A stretch of DNA of 64,000 bases from sequence record NC_015251.1. One strand, written 5' to 3'. Both the position numbers and the translations under genes were made by a program. The notes beneath the pieces are model-generated. The model was not told the origin of the DNA and did not search any database. It saw only the letters and a program-made list of their open reading frames with translations. Below, in pieces: positions 8,065-60,218 of the stretch (its first letter is position 1; every line of letters begins with the position of its first letter).

Positions 8065-8358
8065 TTAACTTTCTAGTTCCAAATCTGGATGTTGGGATAT
8101 CATACAATCAATCATATCGTAAATTCGGCCAGCGTCAAATTCTTCGAATATCTCTTTAATTTGGGAAGGTTTAAGGCTTTTCACCATAACACGAAAGTTC
8201 TGAATAGTTAAAGGTTTTCCTGATGGGGTTGTAAATCCTGCCGTTGATAGGAAATCTATAAAACCTCGCTGAGTATCTAGAATGTCGTCTCTACCAAATT
8301 TGATTAGAATCGATGCAGTTGCCACAATATCTTTAAGGACTTCAATCTTATTGCTCAT
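8065..8358 (-). CDS. asiA: anti-sigma70 factor AsiA
   Basis: DIVATASILIKFGRDDILDTQRGFIDFL closely matches T4 AsiA EIITVASILIKFSREDIVENRANFIAFL. Confidence 0.9.
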   Translation of the reverse strand: MSNKIEVLKDIVATASILIKFGRDDILDTQRGFIDFLSTAGFTTPSGKPLTIQNFRVMVKSLKPSQIKEIFEEFDAGRIYDMIDCMISQHPDLELES

Positions 8359-11944: not shown

Positions 11945-12193
11945 TTAGCTCCAAAGGTATAGTAAGAATAACCCAAAAAATATACCAAGTACAGTAAAAA
12001 TTGCCGCATGGGGTGTATTTAAAAGGTCTTCATGGTCAAAATCTTCTACCCATATGGTACGACCATAAAACTCACTATAAACCCGTTTCATCTTCACGCG
12101 ATTCCCATGAATAACGACTTCACCATTATTCACATCAATTTTGTCAATAACATTAGACATATAAACCTCATACGTTACGAATGAAAAATACAC
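11945..12193 (-). CDS. hypothetical protein with C-terminal TM
   Basis: Packed ORF; likely start 12160. Confidence 0.6.
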   Translation of the reverse strand: MYFSFVTYEVYMSNVIDKIDVNNGEVVIHGNRVKMKRVYSEFYGRTIWVEDFDHEDLLNTPHAAIFTVLGIFFGLFLLYLWS

Positions 12194-12413
12194 CGTTCTT
12201 TACCAGAACATGATTAAGATTGTATATATTCATAGCCTGAGTGTCAACATGTTTTTTAACTCGATACTCAACATTTTTTGTATCACGGTTTACATGGAAA
12301 GAGTAAACCCAATCCTTAACCTTCATAGACAACACAACACATCCATCTAGATCCGGTTGTTGTGTATAACCATCAGCCTTTTTAATATTAATGAACTGTT
12401 CGATAGGAACCAT
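12168..12413 (-). CDS. hypothetical protein
   Basis: GAGG RBS. Confidence 0.7.
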   Translation of the reverse strand: MVPIEQFINIKKADGYTQQPDLDGCVVLSMKVKDWVYSFHVNRDTKNVEYRVKKHVDTQAMNIYNLNHVLVKNGVFFIRNV

Positions 12414-12476
12414 AGCTAAAACCTCATAGGACTGCGTAGAATCGATTATTGGAATGAATATAAATAACGACTCAAG

Positions 12477-12544
12477 TTGATTTATAAATCAAATGGCGAG
12501 CGATAGAGAGTCCCTAACGGGTGTTCGTCTACGACTCACCATTT
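12477..12544. other. structured intergenic element (16-bp perfect palindrome plus multi-stem hairpin)
   Basis: TTGATTTATAAATCAA 12477-12492; AAATGGCGAG/CTCACCATTT stem enclosing TAGA/TCTA and CCC/GGG stems. Confidence 0.6.
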
Positions 12545-12608
12545 CTAATTATAAAGTCTCTATTAATATATTATAGAACTTTATACTTTGATTACACTTG
12601 AAACTAAC
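12542..12608. repeat. 67-bp AT-rich repeat, copy 1
   Basis: 65/67 identical to 50478-50544; internal inverted repeat ATAAAGTcTCTAT/ATAGAACTTTAT. Confidence 0.9.
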
Positions 12609-13071
12609 CAATCACCTTTTTGACTAGGGAACCATCAAACATCATACCTTTAGAGGTAGCGGCTTTCTTACAAGCCCCCATGATTTGACCGATATTTGCC
12701 CCCTGCATAGAGTCAACCACTTCTTTGATTTGGGTTTCATCAAATACTTGTGGCAGATAACTCATATACATCTGGCGCTCAATCAGCAACATGGTGATTT
12801 TAGAGCATTCTTTCAAAACATCAACAGCTTTCTCAAAGCTGCGTAATGGTTGTATCACCCCAAGCTGTTCCAGAGTCTCATCTAGATTCTTCACAACTTC
12901 CGAACAATTTTTCTGTACATCTTCATCAGACACGACTGAATTATGACCAGAAGGAGATGCTTCACCGATCAGAGTAGTCAAGGCGTTGATTTTCATTTTA
13001 CCAACGTGAGTTGTACGTTCTTCAGATTTACGAAGAGTGATTTGGTCTTTCTTAATTTTCTCAAGCAGCAT
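12604..13071 (-). CDS. GatB/YqeY-like protein
   Basis: LEKIKKDQITLRK..LTTLIGEA..VSDEDV..YLPQ..ANIGQIMG pattern. Confidence 0.75.
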   Translation of the reverse strand: MLLEKIKKDQITLRKSEERTTHVGKMKINALTTLIGEASPSGHNSVVSDEDVQKNCSEVVKNLDETLEQLGVIQPLRSFEKAVDVLKECSKITMLLIERQMYMSYLPQVFDETQIKEVVDSMQGANIGQIMGACKKAATSKGMMFDGSLVKKVIG

Positions 13072-17017: not shown

Positions 17018-17245
17018 TTAATGAACCAGAGTTTTGGATTTCTTGGTGATTACTGTAACATCTTTGTAACCATTTTTACGAACGCCTGAAGCGACCGACA
17101 GTGTTTTGTTACCGTTACTTGTGGCCGTTACGGTACGAGCCCAACGCTTTTCAGAAGTAGTACCGTTATCGGTCATCTTACCGAAAGAAGCTTGACGAGC
17201 GGCGGCGCGGGTAGAGAAGAAAACTTGTACGTTAGGCATGGTCAT
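17018..17245 (-). CDS. small basic protein, paralog of 39719-39937
   Basis: FFSTRAAAR..FGKMTDNG..KRWAR..GNKTLSV..GVRKNG..VITKKSKTLVH, nearly the same as its paralog. Confidence 0.8.
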   Translation of the reverse strand: MTMPNVQVFFSTRAAARQASFGKMTDNGTTSEKRWARTVTATSNGNKTLSVASGVRKNGYKDVTVITKKSKTLVH

Positions 17246-27612: not shown

Positions 27613-27959
27613 TATTCTTCCCTCAATGATTTTGCGATTTGTTCCAGTTCGTCAATATTACCACGAAGAGATTCGCGTTGCCAGAAATAATCGTCACCAC
27701 GATCCGATTCGAGATTATAAGATTCTTGAATCTTTGTATCCAGTTCCTTGATATTGCTATAAACTAATATAATCTTTTCCAGATTTTTGTGACCTTCTTC
27801 AACAAATCTGTCCGTGTACATCTGATGACTATTACCTTGGATAAATAAAATCCGGTCGTTGATTTGGTCATCAACGACATAAGTTTTACCAACAATCAAA
27901 GTACGTTCCATATCAAGATTGTCTACGCATACTACATTTTGACCGCTTTTAAATTTCAT
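27612..27959 (-). CDS. hypothetical protein
   Basis: AGGAG RBS; promoter upstream. Confidence 0.75.
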   Translation of the reverse strand: MKFKSGQNVVCVDNLDMERTLIVGKTYVVDDQINDRILFIQGNSHQMYTDRFVEEGHKNLEKIILVYSNIKELDTKIQESYNLESDRGDDYFWQRESLRGNIDELEQIAKSLREE

Positions 27960-27985
27960 GATTATCTCCTTTCATTTAATAAAAA

Positions 27986-28016
27986 GAGTATCCCACAAAC
28001 GGGGATACTCTGTCAA
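27986..28016 (-). promoter_or_regulatory. promoter/stem-loop (PeSL-like) cassette
   Basis: TTGACA-18-GATACT; GAGTATCCC/GGGATACTC stem then T-tract. Confidence 0.85.
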
Positions 28017-30529: not shown

Positions 30530-30829
30530 TTAACTCTCTTGAACAACGGCCTTCAAAACGAAAGTTGATGGAACTTGAGCATCTTCAGGGGCGTTAACAA
30601 AATCGAAATCAGTCCAATCGATTGTCTTTTCGATAACCATTTCAGAAAATCCACCGGCCTTACTAAGGTCTTTCCGGATCTCCATCAATGTATTAATATC
30701 TTGATTGAACACACATACCATGTTCCGGCCTTCACACTTACCATCTACGTTATAGATGACTTGTACACGGTCAATGATATGACCACGGGAAGCGAACAGG
30801 TTTTTGAACTTGATAGCGATATCTTTCAT
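30530..30829 (-). CDS. hypothetical protein
   Basis: AAGGAG RBS inside a repeated cassette. Confidence 0.75.
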   Translation of the reverse strand: MKDIAIKFKNLFASRGHIIDRVQVIYNVDGKCEGRNMVCVFNQDINTLMEIRKDLSKAGGFSEMVIEKTIDWTDFDFVNAPEDAQVPSTFVLKAVVQES

Positions 30830-30836
30830 GGGTAAC

Positions 30837-30887
30837 TCCTTTTGTTTCGACAAAGAGAGTATCCCACAAACTGGGATACTCTGTCAA
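30837..30887 (-). promoter_or_regulatory. promoter/stem-loop cassette with leader and RBS
   Basis: TTGACA-18-GATACT; about 50 bp nearly identical to 60168-60218. Confidence 0.85.
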
Positions 30888-39199: not shown

Positions 39200-39457
39200 T
39201 TACTCCACGATTTCAAGATATTGGATTTCTTCATCAAAGAAGTATGCACGAATTCCCCATCCGAATTCCCCACAAGGTTTACCTTTATTATCCAGAGATA
39301 TTGAAGACGTATCATCATTTACCAGTTCTATCATATCGCTATGGTATTGGATAGCTGTATGAGCTTCCATACCCATATACTCAGCAATGGCCTGATTTGC
39401 ATTACTACCAGAGGCAAACACAAACTTATGTTCAGGGCTTTTAAATCTTACTTTCAT
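39200..39457 (-). CDS. MKIKFKS-family protein
   Basis: MKVRFKSPEHK..ANQAIAEYMGM..YLEIVE. Confidence 0.8.
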   Translation of the reverse strand: MKVRFKSPEHKFVFASGSNANQAIAEYMGMEAHTAIQYHSDMIELVNDDTSSISLDNKGKPCGEFGWGIRAYFFDEEIQYLEIVE

Positions 39458-39460
39458 AAG

Positions 39461-39709
39461 TTATTCTCCTTCAATAACAAAGTAACTACGCTCATGCATA
39501 TAAATGGCTGCATTCCAACCATCATAAAGATCCTGATATGGATAAGGGATAATGATACCTTTACCATCTTTGATCAGTTCGATGATACCATCATTATGGT
39601 TAATAGCCTCATGAGTTCCCATACCCATATACTCAGCAATGGCCTGATTTGCATAACACGTATCAGCGAATTCTTGGCGGGCCTTTTCTGACTTGAAACG
39701 AATCTTCAT
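39461..39709 (-). CDS. MKIKFKS-family protein
   Basis: MKIRFKSEKAR..ANQAIAEYMGM. Confidence 0.8.
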   Translation of the reverse strand: MKIRFKSEKARQEFADTCYANQAIAEYMGMGTHEAINHNDGIIELIKDGKGIIIPYPYQDLYDGWNAAIYMHERSYFVIEGE

Positions 39710-39718
39710 AATATCCCC

Positions 39719-39937
39719 TTAGTGGACCAGAGTTTTGGTTTTCTTGGTGATGATAGTAACGGCCTTATGACCATTGTTGCGAACACCACGGCCCACAGAC
39801 AGGGTTTTGTTGCCAGTGGAAACTACGTCAACACTGCGAGCCCAACGCTTAGGAGCAGTAGAGCCATTGTTGGTCATCTTACCGAAACCAGCAACGCGAG
39901 CAGCAGAACGAGTGGCGAAGAAGATTTGAGCAGTCAT
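39719..39937 (-). CDS. small basic protein, paralog of 17018-17245
   Basis: FFATRSAAR..FGKMTNNG..KRWAR. Confidence 0.8.
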   Translation of the reverse strand: MTAQIFFATRSAARVAGFGKMTNNGSTAPKRWARSVDVVSTGNKTLSVGRGVRNNGHKAVTIITKKTKTLVH

Positions 39938-39962: not shown

Positions 39963-40011
39963 GGGTTTCTGTCTACGGGATTAGTATCTCAATTAGCGTC
40001 TTGTATGTCAA
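39963..40011 (-). promoter_or_regulatory. early promoter cassette with 30-bp repeated leader
   Basis: TTGACA-17-GATACT. Confidence 0.85.
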
Positions 40012-40224
40012 CCAATTATTTTTCTGAAATCAACAAAACTTTGAAACCCCAGATAACCCTTTTCCGACAATCCACACACTAGGATATGTAGAACATACAT
40101 AAAGAACTTTACTGATTTACTCGATTCACGGGTGTCGTGATATGTACCGACACCATTGAAGATGATCCCAGATAGAAACAGACCCGTGATTAGAGAAAAT
40201 CCAGTATGACTATTAACGATGATA

Positions 40225-40503: not shown

Positions 40504-40552
40504 GGGTTTCTGTCTACGGGATTAGTATCTCAAAATGTGGCCTTTGTGTCAA
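40504..40552 (-). promoter_or_regulatory. early promoter cassette with 30-bp repeated leader
   Basis: TTGACA-17-GATACT. Confidence 0.85.
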
Positions 40553-40754
40553 CAACTATTTCTTCCACTACAACAAAATCCCCAAATCCAAAATCGTACT
40601 CACTGCGGATGTGGTCTGGAAACCTTGGGATAACTTTCCAATCAGAGCGATACACAGAGAGTATATCTTCTGGGTGTTGGTTGTATTCCTTTTTCATTGG
40701 ATACGGAATACGAACACAACCCAGATCATAAGATAAGTAATATGTTACTTTCAT
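40530..40754 (-). CDS. hypothetical protein
   Basis: Packed ORF. Confidence 0.65.
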   Translation of the reverse strand: MKVTYYLSYDLGCVRIPYPMKKEYNQHPEDILSVYRSDWKVIPRFPDHIRSEYDFGFGDFVVVEEIVVDTKATF

Positions 40755-46426: not shown

Positions 46427-46941
46427 TATGACAGTTCCTTACCTGTAATAGAATCGATGAAATAGAACCGTGTGATTTCGTCATTTTCAACGATATCTTT
46501 CATCACATCGGTAAACAGATCGGATCCCATATCGAATGTATCAGTGGAATTTCCGGAACGATATTGAGGTGCGCCCCAAGAAAATGACTCCTTAGATGGA
46601 CGAACAATCATACCGGAAGTAGTCACACAATAGATATAGACATTATTATGTTTTTCTGCTTCTTCCATGAGTTCATCAATATGATCAAGAACCCATTGAG
46701 CATCTACCACCACGTTGTGTTTTACAATATGACAGATCTGGCGGTCTGATTCCAGAACAAACACACGATGGTCTTTTGGATCAAACGCCGTGCAGGTATA
46801 GAACAAAGGAACACCGTTGATTTCGATGAGTCGATGATTCATCCCAAACATTCCCATGGTGGAAAATCCATAATTGGTGATTTTGATATTCATAATGTAT
46901 TCCTCATTGTTTTGTCTACGTGGGTAATATCTCATACCCAC
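46426..46941 (-). CDS. hypothetical protein
   Basis: Likely start MNIKIT near 46893 with GAGGA RBS. Confidence 0.7.
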   Translation of the reverse strand: MGMRYYPRRQNNEEYIMNIKITNYGFSTMGMFGMNHRLIEINGVPLFYTCTAFDPKDHRVFVLESDRQICHIVKHNVVVDAQWVLDHIDELMEEAEKHNNVYIYCVTTSGMIVRPSKESFSWGAPQYRSGNSTDTFDMGSDLFTDVMKDIVENDEITRFYFIDSITGKELS

Positions 46942-46954
46942 GATTCTATGTCAA
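46919..46954 (-). promoter_or_regulatory. promoter with -10 in a hairpin loop
   Basis: TTGACA-17-GATATT; CGTGGGTA/TACCCACG arms. Confidence 0.8.
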
Positions 46955-46958
46955 TAAA

Positions 46959-47159
46959 TTATTTTGATTTTACTAATAGATTTTTCAAATCAATAATCTT
47001 AATCCATACCATCTCAATGAAAATCTCGATCAACGTTACTACAACCCAAAAAGCAACCAACGGCCAGAGTAGTGAGTATTTTTTATGACAACCCTTCAAA
47101 ATTAAGACACTATAAACAATAACGTAAATAGACGCCAGCATCAAGATAAAGCTAATCAT
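46959..47159 (-). CDS. small membrane protein
   Basis: Two hydrophobic segments. Confidence 0.6.
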   Translation of the reverse strand: MISFILMLASIYVIVYSVLILKGCHKKYSLLWPLVAFWVVVTLIEIFIEMVWIKIIDLKNLLVKSK

Positions 47160-50433: not shown

Positions 50434-50473
50434 CGAACGTAGTGAGTAACGGCTTTGCCGCCTCGCAAGTTCG
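50434..50473. other. structured intergenic element
   Basis: CGAAC/GTTCG, GTGAG/CTCGC and CGGC-TTT-GCCG nested stems. Confidence 0.6.
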
Positions 50474-50477
50474 GATT

Positions 50478-50544
50478 TTTCTAATTATAAAGTTTCTATT
50501 AATATATTATAGAACTTTATACTTTGATTACATTTGAAACTAAC
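50478..50544. repeat. 67-bp AT-rich repeat, copy 2
   Basis: 65/67 identical to 12542-12608. Confidence 0.9.
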
Positions 50545-50559
50545 TCATATAAAGCGTTT

Positions 50560-50616
50560 TAAGAGACTTTACACTTAACCTATACAAAGTTATAGGGTAG
50601 GTTATAAAGTCTCTTA
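50560..50616. repeat. long imperfect inverted repeat
   Basis: TAAGAGACTTTA/TAAAGTCTCTTA (12 bp) enclosing TAACCTA/TAGGTTA. Confidence 0.85.
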
Positions 50617-59900: not shown

Positions 59901-60160
59901 ACCTCAACTTTAACAATATGATAACCATAACCAAGATATCCCAATTCCTTTTGCATAGAAACCATTCGACCTTGGGCGGCGAAATAAGATGCAAGATTGT
60001 GCTGGTTCATAGTCTCAACAAATACAGCAACCACATAATCGTTTGAGTCTGGACCGTTTTCAATAACCGCATGAGCTTGGCGGAATTTAATTCCCTTCTG
60101 GAAGCGGGCTTTGGCTTCTTGCAGTTTGGCCTTGATTGCTTCATTCATCATATTTTCCAT
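59897..60160 (-). CDS. hypothetical protein
   Basis: AAGGAG RBS inside a repeated cassette. Confidence 0.75.
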   Translation of the reverse strand: MENMMNEAIKAKLQEAKARFQKGIKFRQAHAVIENGPDSNDYVVAVFVETMNQHNLASYFAAQGRMVSMQKELGYLGYGYHIVKVEV

Positions 60161-60167
60161 AATTATC

Positions 60168-60218
60168 TCCTTTTGTTTCGACAAAGAGAGTATCCCACAA
60201 ACGGGGATACTGTGTCAA
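60168..60218 (-). promoter_or_regulatory. promoter/stem-loop cassette with leader and RBS
   Basis: TTGACA-18-GATACT; near-identical to 30837-30887. Confidence 0.85.

Follow-up and report, generated by a model that had tools for sequence, protein, structure and literature searches.

The stretch of DNA analysed here (the window, 64,000 nt) corresponds to record positions 124001-188000 of Aeromonas phage 65, a T4-like phage of the Straboviridae (Emmerichvirinae, Ishigurovirus). Genes around the locus lie throughout on the minus strand, and two of them, ST65p172 and ST65p171, border a non-coding gap of 190 nt whose features are collected in Table 1. A preliminary description had placed in this gap TATAAATA on the plus strand, a perfect 16-bp palindrome, a GC hairpin and a 67-nt AT-rich block recurring 38 kb away, together with two minus-strand TATAAT hexamers lacking a canonical -35. 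All of these are present: the palindrome was recovered as a self-match, the GC hairpin has a stable predicted fold on both strands, and the promoter scan agreed with the account of the hexamers. The same description called the element duplicated. The twin is real, but a two-copy repeat was an incomplete picture, as the genome holds seven copies at six sites; that description dealt with this window only, and five of the seven copies fall outside it.

Table 1. Positions of the features discussed in the text, numbered from the first nucleotide of the window
Feature	Position	Strand	Remarks
ST65p171	12168-12413	minus	borders the gap with copy 1
Non-coding gap, 190 nt	12414-12603		between ST65p172 and ST65p171; holds copy 1 (site v)
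TATAAATA	12459-12466	plus	TATGAATA in avDM6; missing at the CC2 site
Perfect 16-bp palindrome TTGATTTATAAATCAA	12477-12492		kept in avDM6; missing at the CC2 site and in the other copies
GC hairpin module, copy 1	12491-12544		includes the mini-hairpin GTC-GTA-GAC (12527-12535, minus-strand reading)
AT-rich block, copy 1	12542-12608		one of seven copies; 10th least stable 50-bp duplex window of the genome
Quasi-palindrome, ~50 bp	12544-12593		arms TCTAATTATAAAGT / ACTTTATACTTTGA; compensatory changes across lineages
-10-like TATAAT, left arm, outward-facing	12548-12553	minus	no -35 element
TATAAT hexamer	12570-12575	minus	no canonical -35
-10-like TATACT, right arm, outward-facing	12582-12587	plus	TATAAT or TATAGT in other copies
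Invariant box TTGATTNCANNTGAAACTA	12588-12606		after the palindrome
ST65p172	12604-13071	minus	borders the gap with copy 1
GC hairpin module, site vi	50434-50473		CGAAC..GTGAG..CGGC-TTT-GCCG..CTCGC..GTTCG, fully nested
AT-rich block, site vi (twin)	50478-50544		65/67 identical to copy 1; 3rd least stable window
Hairpin beside copy 2	50562-50614		12-nt arms TAAGAGACTTTA / TAAAGTCTCTTA; loop ~30 nt
AsiA homologue	8122-8349	minus	68 bits; record 132122-132349
Repeat families D1-D4	27948-28016, 30819-30887, 60150-60218, 39963-40024, 40504-40565, 46906-46967, others	minus	early-promoter cassettes
Repeat families D5-D7	17018-17227 vs 39719-39928; 39310-39405 vs 39562-39657		diverged coding duplicates

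We regard the element as a cis-acting DNA module of ~130 bp. In its general anatomy, the GC module consists of short complementary words (CGAAC/GTTCG and GTGAG/CTCAC) around a hairpin that is mostly CGGC-NNN-GCCG, and in the quasi-palindrome of the AT-rich block each outer arm reads as an outward-facing -10-like hexamer. The left-arm hexamer also occurs as TACAGT, TACACT or TATACT, with T-12, A-11 and T-7 always retained. Across phage 65, phage CC2 and the prophage described below, the TTGATTNCANNTGAAACTA box is the best-conserved part of the element, and a recognisable counterpart of it is found in Chrysonvirus. Judged by its distribution, the 16-bp palindrome is a local feature of copy 1, and TATAAATA at this copy probably lies outside the element proper.

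At the twin, the ribosome-binding site of ST65p283 comes directly after the GC module on the minus strand. The arms of the additional hairpin beside copy 2 reuse a word from the AT block; at the matching place in CC2 there is a hairpin of other sequence, with GGAAGCTCTACAATC arms, and the structure is conserved.

Copies, synteny and spacing of the element

BLAST searches and an nhmmer profile found exactly seven copies of the AT-rich block at six sites of the 235-kb genome, at record positions ~35.3, 59.3, 102.15, 102.29, 136.5 (copy 1), 174.5 (the twin) and 226.9 kb, the copies at 102.15 and 102.29 kb forming an inverted pair. The same seven copies occur in the close relative avDM6. In two metagenome-derived relatives, DNA-like contig depth was ~sevenfold higher over the block, as expected of a repeat, and a search of sequencing runs found none of RNA or of replication intermediates. 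Between phage 65 and avDM6 the element is 97.9% identical and the surrounding 2 kb 89.8%, and hence the similarity of the element exceeds what would be expected by chance.

In the sister genus Ceceduovirus (CC2 and Assk), the element is found at all six orthologous sites: after inh, near gp24; between alc and vs.1; after gp35, beside a Seg-like endonuclease gene and nrdA; in the gp54-gp26 gap; in the gap between the orthologues of p172 and p171, near ndd and gp52; and before the orthologue of p283 (p284/p283). Two of these Ceceduovirus sites were missed by BLAST and were recovered by alignment of orthologous gaps together with a degenerate pattern. Chrysonvirus (avDM12-TAAL), whose gp26 is only 45% identical, carries a rearranged homologous family at seven sites, with the 13-mer CGAACGTAGTGAG, a CGGC-TAC-GCCG hairpin, an AT palindrome and a TTGATTTCATTGAA box as common parts. 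Three of the seven sites lie beside the same genes as in phage 65 (vs.1, gp26 and ndd/gp52). Since the gp54-gp26 site of Vibrio phage nt-1 is without any gap, the element family seems to be confined to large Aeromonas phages. No earlier description of the element was found in the searchable literature.

Among 46 Aeromonas genomes the element occurred once, inside a prophage of Aeromonas rivipollensis that is also present as an IMG/VR contig, and this single, prophage-borne occurrence rules out a host repeat. The block of the prophage copy has the GC module on either side, as a perfect inverted repeat of 28 nt. Divergent genes border the ~1.4-kb non-coding stretch in which this copy sits, and replication genes are far away. 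The prophage itself is siphovirus-like and lies at ~2.60-2.61 Mb of the A. rivipollensis DSM 24593 chromosome; its lysozyme, of T4 e-type, has 50% identity to the phage 65 enzyme, and a split SegE-like GIY-YIG gene lies close to the element copy. These prophage genes are signs that temperate and T4-type phages of Aeromonas exchange DNA. Because the lysozyme and the Seg-like GIY-YIG gene are common to the prophage and phage 65, the prophage probably acquired its copy from a T4-type phage through such exchange. A search for trans-acting proteins shared by the two found only the lysozyme and the Seg-like endonuclease in common.

The direction from block to hairpin runs with the local genes at four sites and against them at two. 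At the gp54-gp26 site, phage 65 has an inverted pair, Chrysonvirus (avDM12-TAAL) a tandem pair and CC2 a single copy, and therefore this site has been duplicated independently. Strong terminators often precede the element (sites i and iii), and ordinary promoters often follow it, with an extended -10 (TGGTATAAT) at site i, GTTTACA..TATGAT at site iii, and an extended -10 together with CTAAATA before gp26. The element is thus placed in terminator-promoter gaps, and at most sites the gene that follows does not need it as a promoter.

At site ii (record 226.9 kb), a gene replacement and synteny breaks are located exactly at the edge of the element, where the small gene found after the block in relatives, including avDM6 and CC2, has been replaced in phage 65. 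At the vs.1 site of Chrysonvirus, one flank maps to a different region of phage 65. Such arrangements suggest that the elements may act as recombination junctions, and the element would then also mark places of gene-module exchange.

The six phage 65 sites are separated by gaps of 23.9-52.5 kb and are spaced more evenly than chance. The probability of a minimum gap at least as large was 0.009 for phage 65 (six sites), 0.0045 for CC2 (six sites) and 0.0007 for Chrysonvirus (seven sites), and that of a variance as small was 0.002, 0.001 and 0.0008, respectively; spacing and synteny of the two Emmerichvirinae genera are not independent, and the Chrysonvirus test is partly independent because four of its seven sites are not common to phage 65. 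Within uniformly oriented gene arrays, GC skew showed no switch at the sites beyond the effect of gene orientation, and recombination-dependent replication of the T4 type would blur any such signal. Three of the six sites lie near genes that flank T4 origins, a number within chance.

Duplex stability, palindrome and GC mini-hairpins

When the 50-bp windows of the 235-kb genome are ranked by nearest-neighbour energy, each of the seven blocks is among the 11 least stable, and the duplex stability of the block is ~3.5 sd below the genome mean. Extreme instability of this kind is a property expected of an unwinding element. Covariation in relatives, which the preliminary description had named as a check on its reading, was found both in the palindrome arms and in the GC stems. 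In a comparison of 22 distinct copies, 99% of the cells in the palindrome arms are paired, with changes on both sides at three pairs. The observed covariation score was reached by 0 of 500 shuffles, a control that is weakened by the relatedness of the copies. Boxes outside the helices are invariant, namely the TTGATT..TGAAACTA box and the 13-mer, which is kept in three genera.

Folded as RNA, the GC hairpin of copy 1 has an energy of -25.9 kcal/mol on the minus strand (z -5.0) and -21.0 kcal/mol on the plus strand (z -3.5). G-U pairs give conflicting indications of the strand, as had been noticed before: in copy 1 they speak for the minus strand, in copy 2 for the plus strand. The GC stems covary (CGGC/GCCG, CGCC/GGCG, CCC/GGG, CGGGC/GCCCG and CATGC/GCATG), and so do smaller two-pair hairpins (GC-GAA-GC, GT-GAA-AC, GTC-GTA-GAC and AC-GTA-GT). 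The three-base loops are GAA, GTA, GCA, GGA or AAA, with the variation falling at the N of GCGNAGC, and some loops are flipped to the opposite strand between close relatives.

In other copies the hairpin takes the form CGGC-GNA-GCCG, whose loop and closing pairs make up the GCGNAGC mini-hairpin motif. The strict motif is found 16 times in phage 65, on both strands; within 851 bp of elements it was observed twice where 0.06 were expected, an enrichment of ~33-fold. Element sequences contained the motif when it was sought as GCGNAGC or GCGNNAGC. Its variants are GCGCAGC and GCGGAGC in phage 65, GCGAAGC in avDM6, and GCGTAGC together with GCGAAGC in CC2, Chrysonvirus and the prophage. A review describes the GCGNAGC mini-hairpin as an extraordinarily stable DNA structure and places DNA mini-hairpins in regions where phage replication and transcription are initiated, with examples at the phage G4-type primase start site, RSF1010 ssiA and the N4 virion-polymerase promoters (PMC13037366). 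Because the orientation of the element relative to genes varies and the G-U evidence conflicts between copies, a role at the level of DNA is favoured. The spacing of the sites, the melting of the blocks and the structures kept as DNA indicate likewise that this role is genome-wide.

Searches for promoters, terminators and RNAs

Rfam gave no match to the element, either at the gathering threshold or at E up to 5, and ARAGORN found no tRNA or tmRNA in it. The promoter scan detected no canonical sigma-70 promoter in the element and the terminator scan no intrinsic terminator, the GC hairpin being without a U-tract. Inspection by eye led us to reject sites for sigma-54, sigma-32, sigma-E, CRP, FNR and IHF, as well as a DnaA box, a dif/Xer site and a CRISPR-repeat mimic, as the bases needed are missing or are unconserved between genera.

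The search for the C-terminal domain of MotA (MotCF) had no match anywhere in the phage 65 genome, and the MotA box (TGCTT) is absent from the element, in which only TAnnnT hexamers occur. AsiA is encoded (Table 1). A MotA-type middle promoter was rejected, MotA being missing though AsiA is present. AsiA without MotA is the same situation as noted for Aeh1 and KVP40. With neither MotA, nor a -35, nor a MotA box, we infer promoter activity of the element only from TAnnnT hexamers in very AT-rich DNA. A general promoter class consisting of a TCTATWA box and a -10 was also discarded, since the combination is carried only by the seven copies and two chance matches.

A late antisense small RNA, one of the two functions that had been proposed for the gap, is not upheld. 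TATAAATA, as the late promoter driving it, is unconserved (Table 1), Rfam has no match, copies lie in both orientations, and the late motif appears to be CTAAATA. In phage 65, CTAAATA has 53 occurrences, of which 45% immediately precede long reading frames, and TATAAATA has 24, with 21% in such positions. CTAAATA is the late-promoter motif reported for Aeh1 (PMC1524935), and phage 65 probably uses this Aeh1-type late promoter.

Possible functions of the element

The observations on the element concern its copy number, synteny, spacing, duplex instability, covariation and hairpin motifs. Our preferred reading, which we give somewhat less than an even chance, is a consensus replication-initiation module, composed of an unwinding element, hairpins formed on single strands and possibly -35-less outward promoters. 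It gains from the even syntenic sites, the extreme duplex instability and the mini-hairpins of DNA type. Points against it are the GC skew, which does not switch at the sites, and the prophage copy, which is remote from replication genes. Each step of unwinding, transcription, priming or replication in the scheme that follows is one that we infer. The AT-rich quasi-palindrome would be the place where the duplex opens under negative supercoiling, and at the two outward -10-like hexamers RNA polymerase could start without a -35, weakly and in both directions. On the separated strands, the GC module would fold into very stable DNA mini-hairpins of GCGNAGC type, which may hold the site open or stabilise an R-loop, and may mark the entry point for priming or helicase loading. 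Six sites with one consensus would then be spread evenly round the circularly permuted genome, and the logic of T4 oriF and oriG would be realised without MotA, with AsiA kept and with a single consensus for all sites.

T4 has about five dispersed origins, which share no common motif; oriF (uvsY) and oriG (34) are ~100 bp each and combine a promoter without -35 with an AT-rich unwinding element (PMC3016281). Like oriF and oriG, the phage 65 element is a ~100-bp module with an AT-rich unwinding element and a -35-less promoter, the latter only predicted here. In addition, several sites are dispersed round a circularly permuted genome, and no dedicated initiator would be needed, as in T4 (PMC3016281). 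However, the element has one consensus, whereas the T4 origins are motif-less and MotA-dependent, and MotA and the MotA box are absent in phage 65. Its -10-like hexamers are inside the AT-rich part, whereas in T4 the AT-rich part is downstream of the promoter, and GC mini-hairpins are added. Of the marks of a T4-type origin, a candidate AT-rich unwinding element is present and a MotA box at -30 with a -10 is not. As AsiA is kept without MotA, the origin-promoter scheme of T4 would be inapplicable to Aeh1, KVP40 and phage 65.

The GC mini-hairpins of the element are similar to those of the G4/St-1 complementary-strand origins, RSF1010 ssiA and the N4 early promoters in having GCGNAGC with N free and with G and A kept, and the motif lies beside a region expected to become single-stranded, as at mini-hairpin initiation sites (PMC13037366). 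Unlike the phage 65 element, the known cases belong to single-stranded phages, plasmids and a virion RNA polymerase system. To our knowledge, no initiation site with GCGNAGC mini-hairpins has been described for T4-type phages. Herpes simplex oriS, from an unrelated virus, has an AT-rich palindromic centre and GC-rich flanking boxes that refold into a hairpin once unwound, and it needs a dedicated origin-binding helicase; the likeness of the element to oriS is one of architecture only.

With more reserve than for the module itself, we consider it possible that three genera of Aeromonas T4-type phages use a consensus-sequence origin, in the form of 6-7 near-identical modules every 25-50 kb that bring together the genome's most meltable DNA, mini-hairpins and -35-less promoters. 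If this is true, the choice of origin in this phage branch would be defined by sequence, unlike in T4, and the hairpins would signal where a primase or helicase enters, in a way for which only single-stranded phages and plasmids have so far provided examples. Such a consensus origin would be unprecedented in the family, because T4 origins are without a common motif (PMC3016281). A short, conserved, multi-copy and evenly spaced module would offer a concrete and clonable origin candidate for this branch. Even if the element is other than an origin, it would be a conserved genome-wide punctuation mark of the large Aeromonas phages. Phages of this group are under development against fish pathogens.

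A specialised bidirectional promoter cassette with no role in replication is rather unlikely. In such a cassette, AsiA-modified or supercoiling-dependent RNA polymerase would make use of a pair of outward -10 hexamers, with a TCTATWA box near -32 of each, and the GC hairpin would be a 5' leader that stabilises the transcript. This would fit the retention of T-12, A-11 and T-7 in every -10-like variant, the strong terminators just upstream at sites i and iii, the block-to-hairpin direction, which runs into the next gene at four of six sites, and the gene that begins right after the other arm at site ii. In the prophage, GC modules on both sides would provide both outward transcripts with the same leader, and a class of -35-independent promoters is expected where AsiA occurs without MotA (PMC1524935). 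However, the box and the -10 do not form a general class beyond the copies themselves, the scan had no sigma-70 match, the corresponding hexamers of Chrysonvirus are TATAAG or TATTTT, and at sites i, iii and iv ordinary promoters separate the element from the gene that follows. A gene-specific promoter would also leave the even spacing and the extreme melting unexplained. The spacing is equally left unexplained by an RNA-level element of polycistronic transcripts, which we consider quite improbable; here a long AU-rich hairpin and a GC hairpin, like T7 RNase III sites or ERIC/REP sequences, would serve in either orientation as an RNase III-type processing site or as a determinant of mRNA stability. 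Hairpins conserved by covariation, folding z-scores of -3.5 to -5, positions between co-oriented genes in both orientations and the location of the site vi copy inside an apparent operon are consistent with it. Against it stand the invariance of boxes outside the helices, the absence of an Rfam match, and the terminators that precede the element at sites i and iii, so that little read-through RNA would contain it. In Hirao's work, two-base-pair hairpins with GNA triloops are reportedly stable as DNA and not as RNA. Mini-hairpins with GNA triloops are described as a DNA motif in the review (PMC13037366).

A protein that serves the whole genome in some way apart from origin firing could bind or be loaded at the element, and even spacing and fixed positions would suit this too. 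Examples are a topoisomerase or nucleoid-type organiser, the loading of sliding clamps for late transcription, or a structure-specific nuclease whose breaks seed recombination-dependent replication. Concerted evolution, by which the copies of one genus all carry genus-specific bases, the palindromic core with its invariant boxes, and the cruciform-prone AT palindrome point in the same direction. We hold a site of this sort to be unlikely, given that no candidate protein was found, the prophage sharing only the lysozyme and the Seg-like endonuclease with phage 65, and that the changes in the arms look structure-preserving, unlike an altered recognition sequence. Very improbable, finally, is the view that the element is a MITE/ERIC-type palindromic repeat, selfish or neutral, which moves between Aeromonas phages and survives only where it falls in a terminator-promoter gap. 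Its presence in an unrelated prophage beside a Seg-like GIY-YIG gene and a T4-like lysozyme, the 28-nt perfect inverted repeats flanking that copy, the local duplications at the gp54-gp26 site, and the synteny breaks and gene replacements that abut the element would be in line with mobility. However, two genera have kept all six sites and a third has kept three of them, the element is far better conserved than its flanks, and even spacing is unexpected for a mobile repeat. Terminal repeats, target duplications and variable sites, the marks of MITE or ERIC sequences, were not seen, except for the flanking repeats of the prophage copy; the T4-like copies have neither terminal inverted repeats nor target duplications.

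PeSL are conserved, repeated intergenic stem-loop cassettes at the borders of transcription units, where gene replacements occur (PMC2839356, PMC4122927). The element is like them in being a repeated and conserved intergenic cassette with a stem-loop and with gene replacement at its edge. PeSL are numerous, cluster in hyperplastic regions and combine a full sigma-70 promoter with a terminator hairpin, whereas the element has no -35, no U-tract and only 6-7 evenly spaced copies. We rejected a PeSL cassette as the identity of the element, which contains neither a sigma-70 promoter nor a terminator; the PeSL-like repeats of the window belong to separate families, D1-D4 (Table 1). These cassettes have TTGACA, ~14 nt and TG(A/G)GATACT, with an inverted repeat between -35 and -10, and resemble PeSL cassettes of other T4-type phages. 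Families D5-D7 have 74-77% identity, which suggests paralogous small genes in the early region.
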